Sequence record: PV261924.1
Strand: one strand, 5' to 3'
Length of the DNA: 64,000 nt
Shown here piece by piece: positions 11,537-48,875 of this stretch; position 1 is the first letter of the stretch; each line of letters opens with the position of its first letter. The translations under genes and the position numbers were made by a program. The notes beneath the pieces are model-generated. The model had not been told where the DNA came from. It ran no database searches and saw only the letters and a list, made by a program, of their open reading frames with translations.

Positions 11537-11704
11537 TCACTTGACGTAAGTGCGTCCACGGTAGCAAAATGTTCCGTGGGTTTCATTTTTCTCTTCACAG
11601 TGTACATCATACTCAACACCACGATATGCAGTGTGAGAAATCTGTGCGTCGTGAAGTGCAGATGCTTTGTTGATCTGCTTCTTGATCATGTTCAGTGTGT
11701 TCAT
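11537..11704 (-). CDS. DUF4278-like small protein (two YRG motifs)
   Basis: Manual translation MNTLNMIKKQINKASALHDAQISHTAYRGVEYDVHCEEKNETHGTFCYRGRTYVK; GGAG SD. Confidence 0.7.
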   Translation of the reverse strand: MNTLNMIKKQINKASALHDAQISHTAYRGVEYDVHCEEKNETHGTFCYRGRTYVK

Positions 11705-11738
11705 GAGTTTACTCCTGAAATACTAGGGATTTTTACCC

Positions 11739-11954
11739 CGTTCCTTCAGTCGTGTGCGTCCCTGATACACCTCATTCCATGACTGCCGACAAGTTTTTTA
11801 AGAATTTGAGTCTTAGACTTATCAGAAAGATATGGATCTTCCATAACCACATCTATAACTTCCTTCACCGACTCACAGGACATTGGATGTTCTGAAGCAG
11901 TTGCAGGAGTGAATAGAAGTAGAAGGAGTATGAAGTATTTCATGGGATGAACGA
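11739..11954 (-). ncRNA. glnA-like RNA module 2, with a 65-aa ORF inside its P2 loop
   Basis: UCGUUCAUCCC (11954-11944) pairs with GGGACGCACACGACUGAAGGAACG (11762-11739). Confidence 0.55.
11746..11943 (-). CDS. Small signal-peptide protein nested in the RNA stem loop
   Basis: MKYFILLLLLFTPATA signal peptide; ATG directly follows UCCC; last codons RDAHD* are encoded by the RNA 3' strand. Confidence 0.7.
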   Translation of the reverse strand: MKYFILLLLLFTPATASEHPMSCESVKEVIDVVMEDPYLSDKSKTQILKKLVGSHGMRCIRDAHD

Positions 11955-12527
11955 TTAGAGTGATTTTTTCCAGCGACGAATAGAAGTATGAGATGTTTGA
12001 TAAACTTCTGCAAGTTTTCTAATGGGTAAAGATAAAATAGATTCATCTTTACTTACATCTTTTAGAAAGTCATCATACATTTTACCTCTGGTATATGTTA
12101 TGGATTTAGTAGTAGCGTATTCTTTTGGATTACGACTTCTACCTTTCCACCACCCAGAAGGAATGTCATTCTCATAAACTACTCGTTCATTTTTACCGTC
12201 AGTAATACGAACTTTACCAAAACAGGGATTGCCTCTACCAATTCGTTCTCCCTGAGAACAGAAAGAAAATGAAGAAGATGTTTGCTTTGCCCTATTAGCA
12301 AAGTGAGGATTAGTATCAACTTGATAAAACTCATGGAGTTTTACTTCCGCTTCAACTGCTTCCTCTCTCGTAGCATGTTCGGTAAGAATGATTTTAGAGG
12401 AAGGATTAAATGTTTTGTCTCCATAGGAACCAAAATAATTATCCTCCACTGGATTACACTCACATCCTCTGCTACCAATGTAGCCTCTCCCAAAGGGTTC
12501 GTAAGAGTAGTAAGTGTAATAAATCAT
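11955..12527 (-). mobile_element. Free-standing GIY-YIG (Seg-like) homing endonuclease gene
   Basis: YYTYYSYEPFGRGYIGSR (GIY-YIG variant), EEAVEAE, W.KGR motif, C-terminal HTH-like segment. Confidence 0.75.
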
Positions 12528-12542
12528 TCTAATTGCTTACGC

Positions 12543-12586
12543 TCCGTTCCGCGACTTACTTGCGTCCAGTTACCTGGATGAACGAC
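12543..12586 (-). ncRNA. glnA-like RNA module 1
   Basis: UCGUUCA-UCCAG-GUAA-CUGGA-CGCAAGUAAGUCG-CGGAACG: P1 CGUUC/GAACG, P2 hairpin, AAGUAAG loop-E-like strand. Confidence 0.6.
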
Positions 12587-12587
12587 A

Positions 12588-12620
12588 GGTCTATTATAGA
12601 CCACTGTAGTTATTTAGTCA
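12588..12620 (-). promoter_or_regulatory. Promoter elements upstream of the glnA-like RNA
   Basis: CTAAATA late-promoter-like box, then TATAAT inside the palindrome GGTCTATAATAGACC. Confidence 0.45.
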
Positions 12621-12808
12621 AGGGGCCCGTACTCTTCGCCCTCTTTGATCAGTTGGGACACATAGTTTTCTGTCCCATCCATGGTCTTGACTTCGAAGAT
12701 CGTGGACTTCTGATACTTCTTGATCTTTTTATATTTTTTGACGAGGGCTTGAACCTGATCTTGGTTCATGTCCAAACCTTCGAACTTAATGTCAAATCCG
12801 TTACTCAT
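12614..12808 (-). CDS. Conserved hypothetical protein
   Basis: ORF track; KKYKKIKKYQKS..F motif. Confidence 0.65.
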   Translation of the reverse strand: MSNGFDIKFEGLDMNQDQVQALVKKYKKIKKYQKSTIFEVKTMDGTENYVSQLIKEGEEYGPLD

Positions 12809-17229: not shown

Positions 17230-17340
17230 AAAAGTAAGACCATCAGGGAAATGGTGGAGTTACTATTTCCTCGTACCCTTAACGAGGATATGAAAGACGT
17301 GTTTATACTCCCTAGAGGTCTTGGTTTAAGGGGAGTTTAG
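17230..17340 (-). ncRNA. Structured psbA leader, likely PhotoRC-II-type motif
   Basis: Hairpins CCTCGT..ACGAGG, ACCAT..ATGGT and CCT-CTAG-GG in the 5' UTR; this family is known upstream of cyanophage psbA. Confidence 0.5.
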
Positions 17341-17369
17341 GTAAGTCAGGAAACCCTGACCTGTCCATG

Positions 17370-17469: not shown

Positions 17470-19071
17470 TTACTTAGGTAATCTTTTAGCTTTTTCTACT
17501 TTCTTATCAATAGCTTTAATACCAGTCCTTGGCATTGCTTTAGCACTAATAGGATCTAGTTTATTAAATCTTTGAGAAGTCTTCTCACCTGTTACAAGAT
17601 CAGGATGAAGTCCTTTGATCTGAGGTGGTGGTGGATTCTCTGGAAACTCAGGTTTAATATCTTTATCTTTAAAGAATGCTTGTGGATTTTTAAGTTTTCT
17701 TTCCACAATCATTTCTCCTTCTGGTTCATAAGAATTTTTTTGATGTTGTCTATTTGTTTTCCATTTGTTTCTTACTCTCTGTCTATTTTTAACAGCATTT
17801 GCTCTTCTTTCTTCTGCTCTCTTAATTCTTTCAGGATCACCACTAGCATTTGCTGCTTCAAGTTCAGCAGTTGCATCTTGTAATTGTTTATCAGCTGCAG
17901 CAGTTTCTTGTTTTTGTTGTTCACTGGTTCCTCTTTCATAGTCTTGAGCATCTCTTTCAGCTCTTCCCATGTCAGGTTCCCAATTATTGACTAACCATTC
18001 TGCTGCATCATATGACAGATTAGTTACTGCCATAACTCCAGCAACACCCAATCCAATAAGTCCTGAAATAGCTTCAGCACTTAAACCAAGAAGTCCAAGT
18101 TCACCCATGGCTTGATCCATAGCAGTTTGATATAATTCTGTACCATATGGATTCTTAGAAAGTGGTGTCAAGTCTTGACTGTAATCAACCTCTGCTGCTT
18201 GTTCCCATGATGGTGCTTGAGAAGGATCAGTAAACTCTCTGTCGGCATTAGTACCAGGGAAGGAGTCACCAAATTTATTAAGAAGATATTGGTCACTTGC
18301 ATTCATCATCTCTCTGAGTTTTTTAATCTTCTGTTCATTTGATAATTTTGAGAACTCGCCAGTCCTTACAAATGCTGAGGCCTCAGGACTATCAAGTGGT
18401 ACAAATACAGTAAGTGGGGTTCTTCTTTGAAAAACAAATGAATTAACATTCCAAGTTGTGTAATCTCTTGGTGTGCTTGATCCAGCAAAAAAACTTCTTA
18501 ATTGGAATTCAATTTCAGTTCCAAGAACACTTTTTGCGTATGCAAGATCTATGGTTTGACTATTAAATAAATCATTTCTCATGATGTACCAATTATTCGG
18601 ACCACCAGATCTCATTGCTCTAGTTCTATAAAACAATCTCAACTCTTCACTTGAACCAATTGTTCTCTTAGTGATGTTTAACTTTAAAGTTGTATAATTG
18701 GTTAAGTCAATTAAACCAGTCTCTGCTTTTGCATTACCAAAACTACCAGGTATATTATTTGAATCCAACACCATGATGCTTCCATCTACTGATGCTCCAG
18801 TATCTAAAATATATTCTGCAGATGTAACATCAGCAAGAGTTGTTTCTCCTTCAGCAGGAAGAGTAGTGGCATAAGTCATTGCCTGAGTAGTCATGTTCTC
18901 ACTCAGGTCAAATCTCCAGTTAGAATACTTAGGACTATTATTGTTTGCAATTATTTCTAATTCTTTTTTACGACACAGTTCTTCTATACGCTTCTCTTCC
19001 TGAAGCTTCCATGTATTTCTTTTGACATCCGCCATGGATACATGACGAAGAATTGAATTATAAGACGCCAT
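17470..19071 (-). CDS. Modular hypothetical protein, probably virion-associated
   Basis: 533 aa; KYSNWR.DLSE motif, central variable domain, hydrophobic Gly-rich segment, C-terminal PEFPENPPP...KLDPISAKAMP. Confidence 0.7.
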   Translation of the reverse strand: MASYNSILRHVSMADVKRNTWKLQEEKRIEELCRKKELEIIANNNSPKYSNWRFDLSENMTTQAMTYATTLPAEGETTLADVTSAEYILDTGASVDGSIMVLDSNNIPGSFGNAKAETGLIDLTNYTTLKLNITKRTIGSSEELRLFYRTRAMRSGGPNNWYIMRNDLFNSQTIDLAYAKSVLGTEIEFQLRSFFAGSSTPRDYTTWNVNSFVFQRRTPLTVFVPLDSPEASAFVRTGEFSKLSNEQKIKKLREMMNASDQYLLNKFGDSFPGTNADREFTDPSQAPSWEQAAEVDYSQDLTPLSKNPYGTELYQTAMDQAMGELGLLGLSAEAISGLIGLGVAGVMAVTNLSYDAAEWLVNNWEPDMGRAERDAQDYERGTSEQQKQETAAADKQLQDATAELEAANASGDPERIKRAEERRANAVKNRQRVRNKWKTNRQHQKNSYEPEGEMIVERKLKNPQAFFKDKDIKPEFPENPPPPQIKGLHPDLVTGEKTSQRFNKLDPISAKAMPRTGIKAIDKKVEKAKRLPK

Positions 19072-44758: not shown

Positions 44759-44764
44759 GGTACT

Positions 44765-44946
44765 CAGGCTCGCCAAGTTATTTTTATCACTGAGTAATAA
44801 CTAAATCTCAGGCGGGGAGAGATCCCATCCGCACCAACTAATCTTTGGAGAATTAGTAAACTCAGTTGGGTCCAGTGACTCCACCACTTAGTTTTACGAA
44901 CTAAGAAACGCGGGATTGAAGGGGCCTCCCTTCACCGACCAGTGCT
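44765..44946 (-). ncRNA. manA/wcaG-type structured RNA with three repeated hairpin/pseudoknot modules
   Basis: CUUAGUU/AACUAAG, ACUAAU/AUUAGU and AGUUAUU/AAUAACU hairpins, each followed by UGG; family assignment is from recall only. Confidence 0.6.
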
Positions 44947-46085: not shown

Positions 46086-46158
46086 TGGGGGATGTGGGGA
46101 TCGAACCCACCTTTCTCCTGTTATGAGCAGGGTGCTTTCACCAGAGAGCTAAACCCCC
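46086..46158 (-). tRNA. tRNA anticodon CAT (Ile2 or Met)
   Basis: Cloverleaf, loop CTCATAA, T arm GTGGG-TTCGATC-CCCAC; no encoded CCA. Confidence 0.85.
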
Positions 46159-46162
46159 AAGG

Positions 46163-46234
46163 TAGGACTGCTGGGAATTGAACCCAGGTCACACCGTTAT
46201 AAGCAGTGGGCCTTAACCGTTAGGCGACAGTCCC
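46163..46234 (-). tRNA. tRNA-Ile(TAT)
   Basis: CACTG-CTTATAA-CGGTG anticodon arm; acceptor GGGACTG/CAGTCCT. Confidence 0.85.
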
Positions 46235-46407
46235 TAGGGAGCTTCGTTATTATTTTCTGAGTACATTTTGTACAATGGATCGTCAGTTGGCATTATCACT
46301 GCTGCAGATCCATTCTCATTAACTATTCCTATATGTTCCCCTTCTTCTACTCTTTGTATCAGTTCATCCCATCTCTCTTGAAATTCTTGCACCGTGAAGA
46401 CTTCCAT
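46234..46407 (-). CDS. Phd/YefM antitoxin-like small protein
   Basis: Manual translation MEVFTVQEFQERWDELIQRVEEGEHIGIVNENGSAAVIMP...; stop codon shares 1 nt with tRNA-Ile G1. Confidence 0.6.
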   Translation of the reverse strand: MEVFTVQEFQERWDELIQRVEEGEHIGIVNENGSAAVIMPTDDPLYKMYSENNNEAP

Positions 46408-46442
46408 AATTGATAATATTTAGTGGGGGATTGGTTACCCAA

Positions 46443-46516
46443 TCGGAATGACGCGATTCGAACACGCGGCCGCCCGCTCCCAAAGCGGGTGCTCTACCAA
46501 ACTGAGCTACATTCCG
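46443..46516 (-). tRNA. tRNA-Pro(TGG)
   Basis: CCCGC-TTTGGGA-GCGGG anticodon arm. Confidence 0.93.
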
Positions 46517-46606
46517 TGGCGGAAGAGGTGAGATTCGAACTCACGGAGGACTTGCACCCTCGTCGGTTTTCAAGACCGATGCCATAAACCACTCGACCAC
46601 TCTTCC
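46517..46606 (-). tRNA. tRNA-Ser(TGA)
   Basis: TCGGT-CTTGAAA-ACCGA; long variable arm; encoded CCA. Confidence 0.95.
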
Positions 46607-46792
46607 TTATTTCCACAATCCTACCACAATCAACAATCCTTGTGCATAGAAGAACAGTAAAACTGAACCTATACAAGCACTAATGAGAGTAGCAGTCTTG
46701 TTATGTTTATCGATTGCTTTATCTATCATCTCCTGACACTGACGTTCGGTGATGTAGTGTTCGGGTTTGATTTGATCGAATCGATGTGACAT
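46607..46792 (-). CDS. Small membrane protein
   Basis: CQEMIDKAIDKHNKTATLIS followed by a TM segment. Confidence 0.65.
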   Translation of the reverse strand: MSHRFDQIKPEHYITERQCQEMIDKAIDKHNKTATLISACIGSVLLFFYAQGLLIVVGLWK

Positions 46793-46821
46793 AGTAAGTA
46801 TACTGTATGTATCAAAGAATG

Positions 46822-47379
46822 TCAAGTATAAGTATATGCGATTGTCATTCTTGGATGTTTACAAAGAACATTAGGAGCAAACCCCATGTGTTCCAAATGT
46901 GCGGGGAACAAGACTGCGTCGTTAGGAATGAATGATTGATAAAGATATTCTTTGTCTTCAGTCATTACAACAAACTCACCTCCCCATGAACTATTCCAAG
47001 AAGGATTCGCAAAAATTAAAAGAGTCCAACTTCCAAATGAACCATCAGTATGAAACGTAGACTCTTGACCAAAAAACTGAATGTTGGTATTAACTCTATT
47101 TAATGTCAGATTTTGTTTGATAATTTTTTGACATTGATACTTGAGTAGAGTACCATACTTAATCAGTGTAAGGTTATCACCAATAGTATTGAATTTTGAT
47201 AATGGTTTCATCAAACATCCCATATTGGGATGGTCTTCCTCATAACTATCGTTCTTGGTGAATCTCCAGGTATTGTATTTTGAATCCAGTTCGTCGTTCA
47301 GTGAAAAGAAATCCTTTGTATCAAGTATGTTCTTAATACGATAGATGTTATCTTTGACTTCAACGAACCTCAAAATCAA
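46822..47379 (-). CDS. 2OG-Fe(II) oxygenase
   Basis: FHTD, W..SWGGEF, VLFPAHLEH, RMTIAY. Confidence 0.85.
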   Translation of the reverse strand: MILRFVEVKDNIYRIKNILDTKDFFSLNDELDSKYNTWRFTKNDSYEEDHPNMGCLMKPLSKFNTIGDNLTLIKYGTLLKYQCQKIIKQNLTLNRVNTNIQFFGQESTFHTDGSFGSWTLLIFANPSWNSSWGGEFVVMTEDKEYLYQSFIPNDAVLFPAHLEHMGFAPNVLCKHPRMTIAYTYT

Positions 47380-47608
47380 GTCTCCTCACTTTTCTTTTTC
47401 TCCTCTCTTCCTGATAGGAGAGATCAGAGTTACTAAGGACACCTTTTGAAGTTGGCTCCTTGTTAGATTCTACCATCACCACTTTAGACAAGTCAACTGC
47501 TGTAACCTTGTCTTCAATTACCGTCATCATATTGGGACAACCACAACAATGTGTGTGATGGTCACTTCGGATTTCTTTGTTACACTGTTTGCATCTTACA
47601 GTAATCAT
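47360..47608 (-). CDS. Zn-ribbon hypothetical protein
   Basis: CKQC...CCGCPN. Confidence 0.75.
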   Translation of the reverse strand: MITVRCKQCNKEIRSDHHTHCCGCPNMMTVIEDKVTAVDLSKVVMVESNKEPTSKGVLSNSDLSYQEERRKRKVRRLDFEVR

Positions 47609-47630
47609 GGGTCATGTTTGTAATTCGATA

Positions 47631-47702
47631 TGGGAGTTACAAGATTCGAACTTGTGACCAATTGCGTGTAAAGCAACTGCGCTACCGCTGCGCTAAACTC
47701 CC
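47631..47702 (-). tRNA. tRNA-Val(TAC)
   Basis: GTTGC-TTTACAC-GCAAT; acceptor GGGAGTT/AACTCCC. Confidence 0.92.
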
Positions 47703-48106
47703 TTAGGATGACCCCCATTTTTGTATCTACCACCTTTACTTTTGTTTGGTGGTAATGTCTTTACTGCATGGCAGTTAGGACACAATACCTGGAGATTATC
47801 TTGACTGTGATTGAAGGGGTCATTATCTATATGGTCAATCTCCAGTGGCACATTACCAGTGTGTGGATTTACCTGAGACCAACCACAACAAGAACATTTA
47901 TAATCACTTTGTTCAAGTAAATATCTTCTTACATGGTTGGATACGATATATCCGTTACCCCCTGGACCTCCCTTCTTCCACTCTTCAACAAACAAATGTC
48001 TGGAGTGGTCTGACTGGCACTTACTACTACAATACTTGCCCTTCTTGTGATGGGGATTGTATGTGAATTCAGTGCCGCAAGACAGACAAGAGGAGGAGAG
48101 TAACAT
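47693..48106 (-). mobile_element. Free-standing HNH endonuclease gene in the tRNA cluster
   Basis: CLSC/YCSSKC, CSCCG, LEIDHIDNDPFNHSQDNLQVLCPNCH; own TATAAATA late promoter at 48127-48134; 3' end overlaps tRNA-Val. Confidence 0.85.
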
Positions 48107-48151
48107 AATCTGGTAGAGTGGTGTTTTATTTATAAACAACACTACTACCAA

Positions 48152-48223
48152 CTGCCCCGACTGGATTCGAACCAGTAACCTTGAAGTTAACAGCTTCCTG
48201 CACTGCCGTTGTGCTACAGGGCA
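48152..48223 (-). tRNA. tRNA-Asn(GTT)
   Basis: GAAG-CTGTTAA-CTTC anticodon arm. Confidence 0.9.
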
Positions 48224-48228
48224 TTTAC

Positions 48229-48423
48229 CTAACTGGATTTCTCCTCTTTAGCGGTCTTGAAGTAAAGTTTGTAATACCGTTGTTTCATTTCTGAAATGGT
48301 ATTCATGTCCTCTTCATACCCCATGTATTTAAGGAGTTGAAAAGAACCCTCAAGTTCACTGATCAATCGTAACATATTGATTGAAGATCTGTCAAGACCT
48401 CCGAACGTGTACTCTTTACTCAT
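48229..48423 (-). CDS. Hypothetical protein between tRNAs
   Basis: MSKEYTFGGLDR...LRLISELEGSFQLLKYMG; GGAGG SD. Confidence 0.65.
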   Translation of the reverse strand: MSKEYTFGGLDRSSINMLRLISELEGSFQLLKYMGYEEDMNTISEMKQRYYKLYFKTAKEEKSS

Positions 48424-48439
48424 AAACCTCCTAGGAGGA

Positions 48440-48512
48440 TGGAGAATAGGAGACTCGAACTCCTGACAGCCTGCTTGCAAAGCAGGTGCTCTACCAACTG
48501 AGCTAATTCCCC
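48440..48512 (-). tRNA. tRNA-Ala(TGC)
   Basis: CCTGC-TTTGCAA-GCAGG; G3:U70 pair. Confidence 0.95.
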
Positions 48513-48588
48513 TGGAGCCACTCACAGGACTCGAACCTGCGACTTGAGCTTTACAAAAGCCCTACTCTACCAACTGAGTTAGAGTGGC
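48513..48588 (-). tRNA. tRNA-Thr(TGT)
   Basis: GGGC-TTTTGTAAA-GCTC; encoded CCA. Confidence 0.93.
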
Positions 48589-48590
48589 AT

Positions 48591-48779
48591 GGGTTGGGCA
48601 GAAGGATTACATTATACCTTCAACAGAGGGGTCTCACTAATGTAGTAACGCCTCTGAACTTTCAGGACCCTTGGTATGGGTTCTCATGCCTCCTGTCTCC
48701 AGGTCACATGGTGGCCACCACAGCCTTCCTTACTATACAATGTTGGGTGCTTGACCACACCAACTTTTCTGTCATACCC
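48591..48779 (-). ncRNA. Candidate structured ncRNA between tRNA-Arg and tRNA-Thr
   Basis: No credible sense ORF; several hairpins incl. CCUG-GAGA-CAGG and CAGAGG/CCUCUG; 5' and 3' ends complementary. Confidence 0.55.
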
Positions 48780-48801
48780 TATGGAGATGATCAATCTCCA
48801 A

Positions 48802-48875
48802 CGACTCAAGTAGGATTCGAACCTACGACCGACTGCTTAGAAGGCAGTTGCTCTAATCCGCTGAGCTACTGAGTC
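48802..48875 (-). tRNA. tRNA-Arg(TCT)
   Basis: ACTGC-CTTCTAA-GCAGT anticodon arm. Confidence 0.95.

Follow-up and report, generated by a model that had tools for sequence, protein, structure and literature searches.

The subject of this study is a small gene that interrupts a glutamine-riboswitch-like RNA in a 64,000-nucleotide (nt) stretch of sequence record PV261924.1, referred to below as the window. The gene was found to lie in a 588-nt insert (11955..12542, minus strand) and to encode a protein of 190 amino acids (aa). It is very probably a free-standing homing endonuclease gene of a divergent GIY-YIG-like family, one lineage of which is specialised on the loop of the inner hairpin of this riboswitch. 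The phage of the window is a T4-like cyanomyovirus; a test stretch was 100% identical in Synechococcus phages RN05-S and S-H68, and 99.8% identical in phages S-B43 and RB11-B.

Occupied and empty alleles

The nearest sequenced relative without the gene was phage S-B05, which has the same host and whose flanking sequences were 99.6% identical. In the window, the 5' part of the RNA ends ...GGAACGGAG at 12542, and the insert is flanked by GGAACGGAG and TCGTTCATCCC. The order on the minus strand is ...GGAACGGAGCG, then TAAGCAATTAGA-ATG of the 190-aa open reading frame (ORF), a TAA stop, and then TCGTTCATCCC-ATG of a 65-aa ORF, exactly the letters described in an earlier note on this DNA. The junction of S-B05 reads GGAACGGA-TCGTTCATCCC-ATG with nothing between, which is one base off the empty junction predicted in that note. 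This junction was read directly and was confirmed by a script and by the contig joint; a three-way MAFFT alignment had misplaced the upstream flank of S-B05. In the marine metagenome X8, which carries no flag as a possible source of the window, one contig joined 11954 to 12543 and skipped exactly 588 nt at a depth of ~75, and a perfect occupied contig was present at a depth of ~21; therefore both alleles coexist in one sample. Presence and absence of the gene at the same site in near-identical genomes were thus observed between the window and S-B05 as well as within X8. As the earlier note had proposed, the ORF is an insertion that left the flanking RNA elements intact.

The predicted empty junction itself, GGAACGGAGCGTTCATCC (G-type), was found verbatim in at least 120 IMG/VR contigs (counts derived from IMG/VR are lower bounds), so that the contiguous empty allele exists in exact form there and in a near version in S-B05. 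The left 16-nt flank was identical to that of occupied alleles in 100 of these contigs. A T/A-type empty junction, GGAACGGA(A/T)TCGTTCATCY, accounted for at least ~95 true riboswitch junctions. The boundary of the insert is ambiguous by 1 nt with respect to the T-type empty site, and by a CGT repeat with respect to the G-type empty site.

Spread, remnants and choice of site

The gene was 99% identical at the nucleotide level in phage Sf-CH5 and 96–97% identical in four IMG/VR contigs. In contrast, the flanks of these loci (300–400 nt on each side) were only 49–73% identical to the window, and their loop ORFs were unrelated. All occupied alleles had in common no more than ~22 nt of left and ~14 nt of right flank. 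The gene was thus conserved far above its surroundings.

Degenerate copies were also observed. A 61-nt remnant, in which the leader and first codons are joined to the last 17 nt, was present in five IMG/VR contigs (L005, L008, L009, L013 and L014), and was the product of a 527-nt internal deletion between short repeats ending in TC. These contigs represent one phage background in which the scar is fixed and which was sampled in five metagenomes. Remnant-like joints of 524–541 nt (11968–11977 to 12498–12510) were seen in environmental runs. Such a combination of invasion, low frequency and decay is the course that homing endonuclease genes classically follow.

When viral contigs were scanned with the protein as a guide, at least 41 full-length relatives with identities of 51–99% were found. 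Among the matches listed, all 39 scorable full-length loci lay directly after strand s2 of the RNA (described below), 33 of them after an exact GGAACG and 6 after a covarying variant; of 39 relatives sharing only the N-terminal domain, again among the matches listed, one was at that site. Distant members with 49–66% identity (L134, L136, L259, L260, L261 and L301) occupied the same place, implying that the association of the lineage with the site is old. Their start codons were found 0–7 nt after GGAACGG, and their coding sequences run into the next RNA strand.

Position of the insert in the RNA

All relevant elements of the locus are on the minus strand:

12593..12621, minus: sigma-70-type early promoter, TTGACT, 17 nt, TATAAT (11 of 12 consensus matches)
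12542..12584, minus: 5' part of the glutamine-riboswitch-like RNA (RF01739, 27.6 bits; covariation)
11955..12542, minus: mobile insert of 588 nt, a leader of 14–15 nt plus the putative endonuclease ORF (absent from S-B05; contig joint in X8)
11955..12527, minus: putative endonuclease ORF, 190 aa, free-standing (ORF list; phrog_314; AlphaFold2 models)
11944..11953, minus: strand s3 CGUUC (11953–11949) and 5' strand of hairpin H2, UCCC (11947–11944) (sequence; compensatory change CAACG/CGUUG in L276–L282)
11746..11943, minus: 65-aa ORF with a signal-peptide-like start, within the apical loop of hairpin H2
11739..11762, minus: 3' part of the RNA (shared-helix covariation in 199 distinct loci; s1/s4 compensatory change)
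11537..11704, minus: gene of a 55-aa DUF4278 protein, IF17-like, the regulated downstream gene; GGAG precedes its ATG
11506–11491, minus: terminator-like hairpin after the DUF4278 gene

In the 5' part, strand s1 CGUUC (12584–12580) is followed by hairpin H1 (12578–12565), CGCAAGUAA, the left strand of a shared helix, AGUCG (12556–12552), strand s2 GAACG (12549–12545) and the loop GAG (12544–12542). The 3' part contains the 3' strand of H2, GGGA (11762–11759), CGCACA, the right strand of the shared helix, CGACU (11752–11748), GAA, G and strand s4 GAACG (11743–11739). Strand s4 pairs with s1, and s3 (11953–11949) pairs with s2 across the insert. The structure thus comprises an outer helix (12584–12580 with 11743–11739), hairpin H1 and the shared helix (12556–12552 with 11752–11748), which encloses H2 and an inner hairpin of the type GAACG-GAG-CGUUC. 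The loop of this inner hairpin measured 2–5 nt in 174 of the 199 distinct loci parsed for covariation; in the window it accommodates the 588-nt endonuclease gene, with the 65-aa ORF in the loop of H2.

The shared helix was evident from the covariation of the 199 loci, in which pairing links the segments immediately 5' of the first GGAACG and of GAAGGAACG. Its innermost pair was G-C in 130 loci, U-A in 48, A-U in 19 and unpaired in 2, and its fifth pair was A-U in 120 and C-G in 70; the observed pairing was reached by none of 2000 partner shuffles. Two independent P1 helices would each form a pseudoknot with this shared helix. In the occupied loci L276–L282, all four strands are altered at one and the same helix position (CGUUU, CAACG, CGUUG and AAACG); the altered bases give U-C and G-A mismatches when read as tandem units, but U-A and C-G pairs when s1 is paired with s4 and s2 with s3. 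Because a compensatory s2/s3 change occurs in occupied alleles, albeit of one lineage, the s2/s3 helix seems to be kept even with the gene inside. RF01739 is unable to span inserts and, on the left unit of the window alone, gave 27.6 bits against a gathering score of 35. Among insert-free homologues, L032 scored 43.6 bits as one aptamer and L050 39.6 bits; the L032 alignment took its 5' half from 'module 1' and its 3' half from 'module 2'.

The earlier note had placed the insert between two RNA modules arranged as tandem units. This part of its description had to be revised: in view of the shared-helix covariation, the changes in L276–L282 and the L032 alignment, the independent-tandem-aptamer model was rejected. 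Comparison of the sequences supports one interlocked glutamine-riboswitch-like structure with the insert in the apical loop of its inner hairpin. Two aptamer-like three-way junctions, placed back to back on the shared helix, appear to make up the 'tandem' glutamine riboswitch that is widespread in cyanophages; the inner junction would be circularly permuted and closed by the 2–5-nt loop. This arrangement is backed by covariation at several pairs.

In loci L276–L279, L281 and L282, all four P1-type strands were changed at the junction-adjacent pair (outer C-G to U-A, inner G-C to C-G). Since these nucleotides are otherwise invariant, ligand binding there may differ. Beyond the insert, the window (12565–12592) and S-B05 differ in H1, with a loop of 4 nt in the window and a hairpin longer by ~37 nt in S-B05, in one base after TATAAT and in the junction base (G/T). 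These differences may reflect co-conversion over a tract of ~50 nt that is confined to the upstream side.

Fold and family of the encoded protein

The 190-aa protein was divided into a GIY-YIG-like putative catalytic domain (aa 1–85, 12527–12273), a beta-hairpin linker (aa ~100–131) and a helix-turn-helix (HTH) domain (aa 142–190, 12104–11958). In PHROGs it matched the homing endonuclease family phrog_314 (1.3e-8). The AlphaFold2 models had a predicted local distance difference test score of 86.8 for the whole protein and 84.9 for the N-terminal domain alone, the latter being modelled in the order strand, strand, loop, strand, helix. When the models were compared with 48,161 chains by VIA-align, the top match was the catalytic domain of I-TevI (Z 6.2 for the whole model, Z 6.5 for the domain alone; root mean square deviation 2.5, 74 of 92 residues aligned). 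The next matches were all GIY-YIG nucleases, namely UvrC (Z 5.3), PD-T4-3 (Z 5.0), T4 EndoII (Z 3.8) and At-HIGLE (Z 3.8). Only 2 of the 48,161 chains reached Z 5, and the background at rank 50 was Z 2.2. The three-stranded antiparallel sheet flanked by helices that characterises GIY-YIG nucleases was present in the model, at Z values below 8 and without significance in Foldseek. An AP2-like DNA-binding fold was also considered for the N-terminal domain and was rejected, as it gave a Z of only 2.2–2.3 compared with 6.5 for I-TevI. The segment aa 142–190 matched HTH and homeodomain-like structures.

The motif pattern pointed in the same direction. M-IYYTYY was found on the strand formed by residues 2–9 and GRGYIGS on that formed by residues 15–22, the counterpart in I-TevI being GIYQIK...KVYVGS; Y4, Y6, Y7, Y16 and G18 were invariant in 46–56 sequences. 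The invariant E61 lies in the helix 54–68, 10 residues past strand 3, and the invariant N78 follows 17 residues further. E61 and N78 have the same order as E75 and N90 of I-TevI, to which they were matched by position and not by residue-level structural alignment, and the whole series IYY...GYIG, E61, N78 is collinear with GIY...YVG, E75, N90. The models and motifs fit a divergent GIY-YIG-like nuclease, the fold that the earlier note had assigned to the protein.

More than 400 homologues were found to share the ~90-aa N-terminal domain, with ~20 invariant residues (Tyr, Arg, Glu, His and Asn among them) in the more than 50 sequences compared. The domain is fused to varying modules (NUMOD3, I-HmuI-like or HTH). 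Phage homing endonucleases show the same modular build, and their constant domain is the catalytic one. One homologue of the domain (L003, S-PM2 127565–128194) lies beside F-CphI between psbA and psbD, where two nuclease genes adjoin, and another (L004, S-SRM01 18053–18703) between the genes of a DUF1825-family protein and an ssDNA-binding protein. Such positions are typical of free-standing homing endonucleases.

Start signals and possible control by glutamine

The placement of the promoter is such that transcription would start just 5' of the RNA element, and its position was conserved in S-B05, Sf-CH5 and metagenomic loci. The endonuclease gene is the first ORF behind it. According to the earlier note, the gene takes over the Shine–Dalgarno sequence of the small ORF downstream. 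The GGAG in question consists of the last G of s2 and the loop GAG and lies 14 nt ahead of the endonuclease ATG, a poor spacing, while the same GGAG is 10 nt ahead of the nested-ORF ATG in G-type empty sites. S-B05, the nearest empty relative, has GGAT instead. One relative has GGAG, 5 nt and GTG; in other relatives the ATG follows 0–2 nt after GGAACGG. Such a takeover is not supported by these sequences.

In every lineage, however far this spacing varied, the start of the endonuclease gene was 0–15 nt past the RNA strand. The start region always overlaps an RNA strand needed in pairing for sensor folding, and the stop codon abuts the partner strand, which makes a coupling of RNA folding and translation plausible. 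Cyanobacterial glutamine riboswitches are translational ON switches for DUF4278 (IF17-like) genes (Klahn et al. 2018, PMC6212724), and glutamine binding and ligand-dependent control are known for cyanobacterial members (PMC6212724). It is conceivable, though we regard it as doubtful, that synthesis of the endonuclease, and hence homing, is switched by host glutamine, perhaps reciprocally to the IF17-like gene. The idea gains somewhat in plausibility because every lineage starts 0–15 nt after the RNA strand. If true, the spread of a mobile element would be gated by the metabolite-sensing riboswitch that houses it.

Proposed mechanism and alternative explanations

The putative target of the enzyme is the 2–5-nt apical loop of the GAACG-GAG-CGUUC hairpin, in the RNA ahead of the IF17-like (DUF4278) gene of T4-like cyanophages. 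The DNA of this hairpin would be kept near-constant by the needs of the RNA, and the nuclease would thus have a conserved target from which mutation offers the phage no easy escape. During mixed infection, the empty allele would be cut by the enzyme and would receive the gene when it is repaired from the occupied genome. The apical loop would tolerate a large insert, as the RNA helices could still close around the gene, as they do around ORFs in the peripheral loops of introns. The gene would be transcribed from the early promoter of the riboswitch, and with its start codon 14 nt past the RNA strand, folding could influence its translation.

Several observations weigh against this interpretation. 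No match to a GIY-YIG sequence profile (PF01541 or related) was found for the protein and 46 relatives in Pfam, and NCBIfam was likewise blank. A profile search of the PDB and a phmmer search gave no match for the fold, hhalign against I-TevI returned a probability of 0.6%, and all E-values of Foldseek against the PDB were above 1. With these sequence routes blank, the GIY-YIG assignment rests on the VIA-align matches and the motif pattern, and a Z of 6.5 is in a range where models may share only a common arrangement. Where I-TevI has the helix bearing the catalytic Arg (R27), the protein has a loop (aa 23–43); R14 is invariant and R20 nearly so, but their spacing differs from that of R27. On the RNA side, the compensatory P1-type changes come from one lineage and hence represent two events, and it is physically demanding for a long-range helix to close over an ORF of 588 nt that is being translated. 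The leader fold was not more stable than shuffled sequence (z 0.56), and a hairpin hiding the endonuclease start was therefore discarded. The gene is covered by metatranscriptome contigs from three studies, which, having been assembled from RNA libraries, are no proof of transcription; two of the four environmental runs were estuary or freshwater RNA libraries with relatives, not the same phage.

Some of these points would suit a different kind of gene. The ORF might be an accessory gene under riboswitch control, without nuclease activity (for example a domesticated DNA-binding regulator), exchanged among phages by ordinary homologous recombination between the conserved RNA-coding flanks rather than through cleavage of its own. 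In favour of this are the plain DNA-binding fold of the C-terminal HTH, the lack of the canonical Arg-bearing helix and a start codon that in all cases adjoins the RNA strand, as that of a regulated cargo would; in addition, neighbouring loops of this RNA harbour small ORFs that do not encode nucleases. However, ~20 invariant positions of the N-terminal domain across more than 50 sequences fit an active site, this domain also occurs fused to modules of the NUMOD3 and I-HmuI types, as is typical of homing endonucleases, and low frequency with decayed remnants fits a selfish life cycle. We consider this explanation improbable. A single arrival by illegitimate microhomology insertion at CGT, followed by spread through descent and general recombination only, was judged very unlikely. 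The earlier note had proposed a CGT microhomology, and a CGT direct repeat does bracket the insert when it is compared with the G-type empty site; yet a three-base repeat is expected by chance within conserved sequence. Homing from homologous flanks fits better, because the gene is 96–99% identical across divergent backgrounds (flank identity 49–73%) and the flanks common to occupied alleles are short (~22 and ~14 nt). Moreover, lineages at 50–66% identity, with leaders of different lengths, sit in the same loop.

Membership of another nuclease family, either HNH (beta-beta-alpha-metal) or that of F-CphI with its Endo VII motif (DHDH plus Cys; PMC6083498), is hardly credible. It is suggested by the GenBank product names 'HNH' in RN05-S, RB11-B and S-SRM01, by a weak match to the HNH family phrog_10820 (0.008), by the invariant H65, N73, H75 and N78, which resemble an H-N-H string, and by a tblastn match beside F-CphI in S-PM2. 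On the other hand, neither the protein nor 46 family members had an HNH or Endo VII match in Pfam, and the model has a three-stranded sheet and a helix, with H65 within the helix, rather than a beta-beta-alpha finger; the fold thus differs from the metal fingers of both families, and the top structural matches were all GIY-YIG. The S-PM2 match turned out to be ORF178, the gene adjoining F-CphI and not F-CphI itself, and kinship with F-CphI was dropped.

Relation to known systems

A GIY-YIG-like homing endonuclease in this position resembles several known systems in part. With I-TevI and the Seg proteins of T4 it shares a ~90-aa N-terminal catalytic domain with GIY and YIG strands, a Glu-bearing helix and an Asn, followed by a flexible linker and a C-terminal HTH DNA-binding domain; like the seg genes, it stands free between conserved sequences, where its presence is optional. 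It differs from them in having no detectable sequence similarity and in its insertion site, which is a riboswitch hairpin loop in a 5' untranslated region instead of an intron or an intergenic gap. Compared with I-TevI, it has a 20-residue loop in place of the Arg-bearing first helix and invariants of its own (Y31, G33, S34 and K45). As in group I introns, the ORF occupies the apical loop of a structured RNA whose helices can close, a functional sequence dictates a conserved target, and the closing helix is kept by covariation in occupied alleles. The host RNA is, however, a ligand-sensing riboswitch and not a ribozyme; it is unspliced, and the ORF stays in the leader of the mature mRNA.

Two uncharacterised proteins, ORF178 of S-PM2 (S-PM2d178) and the 'NUMOD3 protein' of S-SRM01, are also comparable. 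They have the same N-terminal domain (58–60% identity over aa 1–100) and are likewise optional genes between conserved cyanophage genes, but they carry other C-terminal DNA-binding modules and occupy other insertion sites. The RNA corresponds to tandem glnA (glutamine-I) RNAs (RF01739) in its CGUUCA, ACGCAAGUA and GAAGGAACG elements and in its association with DUF4278 (IF17-like) genes. In contrast to the tandem description, covariation here favours an outer aptamer, a shared helix and an inner permuted unit, and the apical loops carry ORFs. Tandem glnA RNAs had already been noted by Weinberg et al. 2010 (PMC2864571), and the association of glutamine riboswitches with DUF4278 genes was reported in PMC6212724. 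In a survey from 2017, cyanophage genomes yielded no more than two aptamers of glutamine riboswitches (PMC5473149).

Homing endonucleases are known to target introns as well as genes for proteins, rRNAs and tRNAs. T4-like phages commonly carry free-standing GIY-YIG endonucleases, and the ORFs of introns reside in peripheral loops. The mobile element is therefore ordinary in principle, and the niche is new: literature searches found no report of a homing endonuclease with a riboswitch as both its target and its residence. Neither the nuclease clade nor the RNA topology appears to have been described previously.

These results indicate that a peripheral loop of a sensor RNA can house a mobile gene, as intron loops do. 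They also reveal a large nuclease family of marine phages (more than 400 members, including S-PM2 ORF178) that was missed by profile libraries and labelled HNH in GenBank. According to the revised RNA model, the 'tandem' glutamine riboswitches that are common in cyanophages would each form a single interlocked structure. Since the occupied phages S-B43, RN05-S and RB11-B and the empty phage S-B05 all infect Synechococcus sp. MW02, a ready test system exists for homing, co-conversion and glutamine dependence.

Neighbouring genes and other RNA elements

The stop codon of the 65-aa ORF is the conserved UGA in ...CGACUGAAGG. It is followed by ...GGGACGCACACGACTGAAGGAACGG and then by the DUF4278 gene, whose 55-aa product matched phrog_545 (5.5e-36) and PF14105 (2.2e-4, below the Pfam cut-off). 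The product resembles IF17, a glutamine-synthetase inactivating factor. A small hairpin GGGGUAAAAAUCCC (11726–11739, minus strand), the first G of which is shared with s4, was located upstream of the GGAG of this gene and may be part of the expression platform.

Small nested ORFs, often hydrophobic or signal-peptide-like (many starting with M-x-E/D-L-L-L-Y), were observed in the apical loops of H2 and sometimes of H1. Their ATG directly follows CAUCC(C), and their stop is in or near the conserved GACGCA / CGACUGAAGG. They occur in L002, L006, L010–L012 and most empty-site loci, and Sf-CH5 has one in both hairpins. Folding of the RNA and translation of the nested ORFs should be mutually exclusive. 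Elsewhere in the window, Rfam searches detected nine tRNA genes in an array as well as PhotoRC-II, wcaG and manA RNAs, all on the minus strand (within 17255–17348, 44762–44865, 48591–48800 and 46086–48875).

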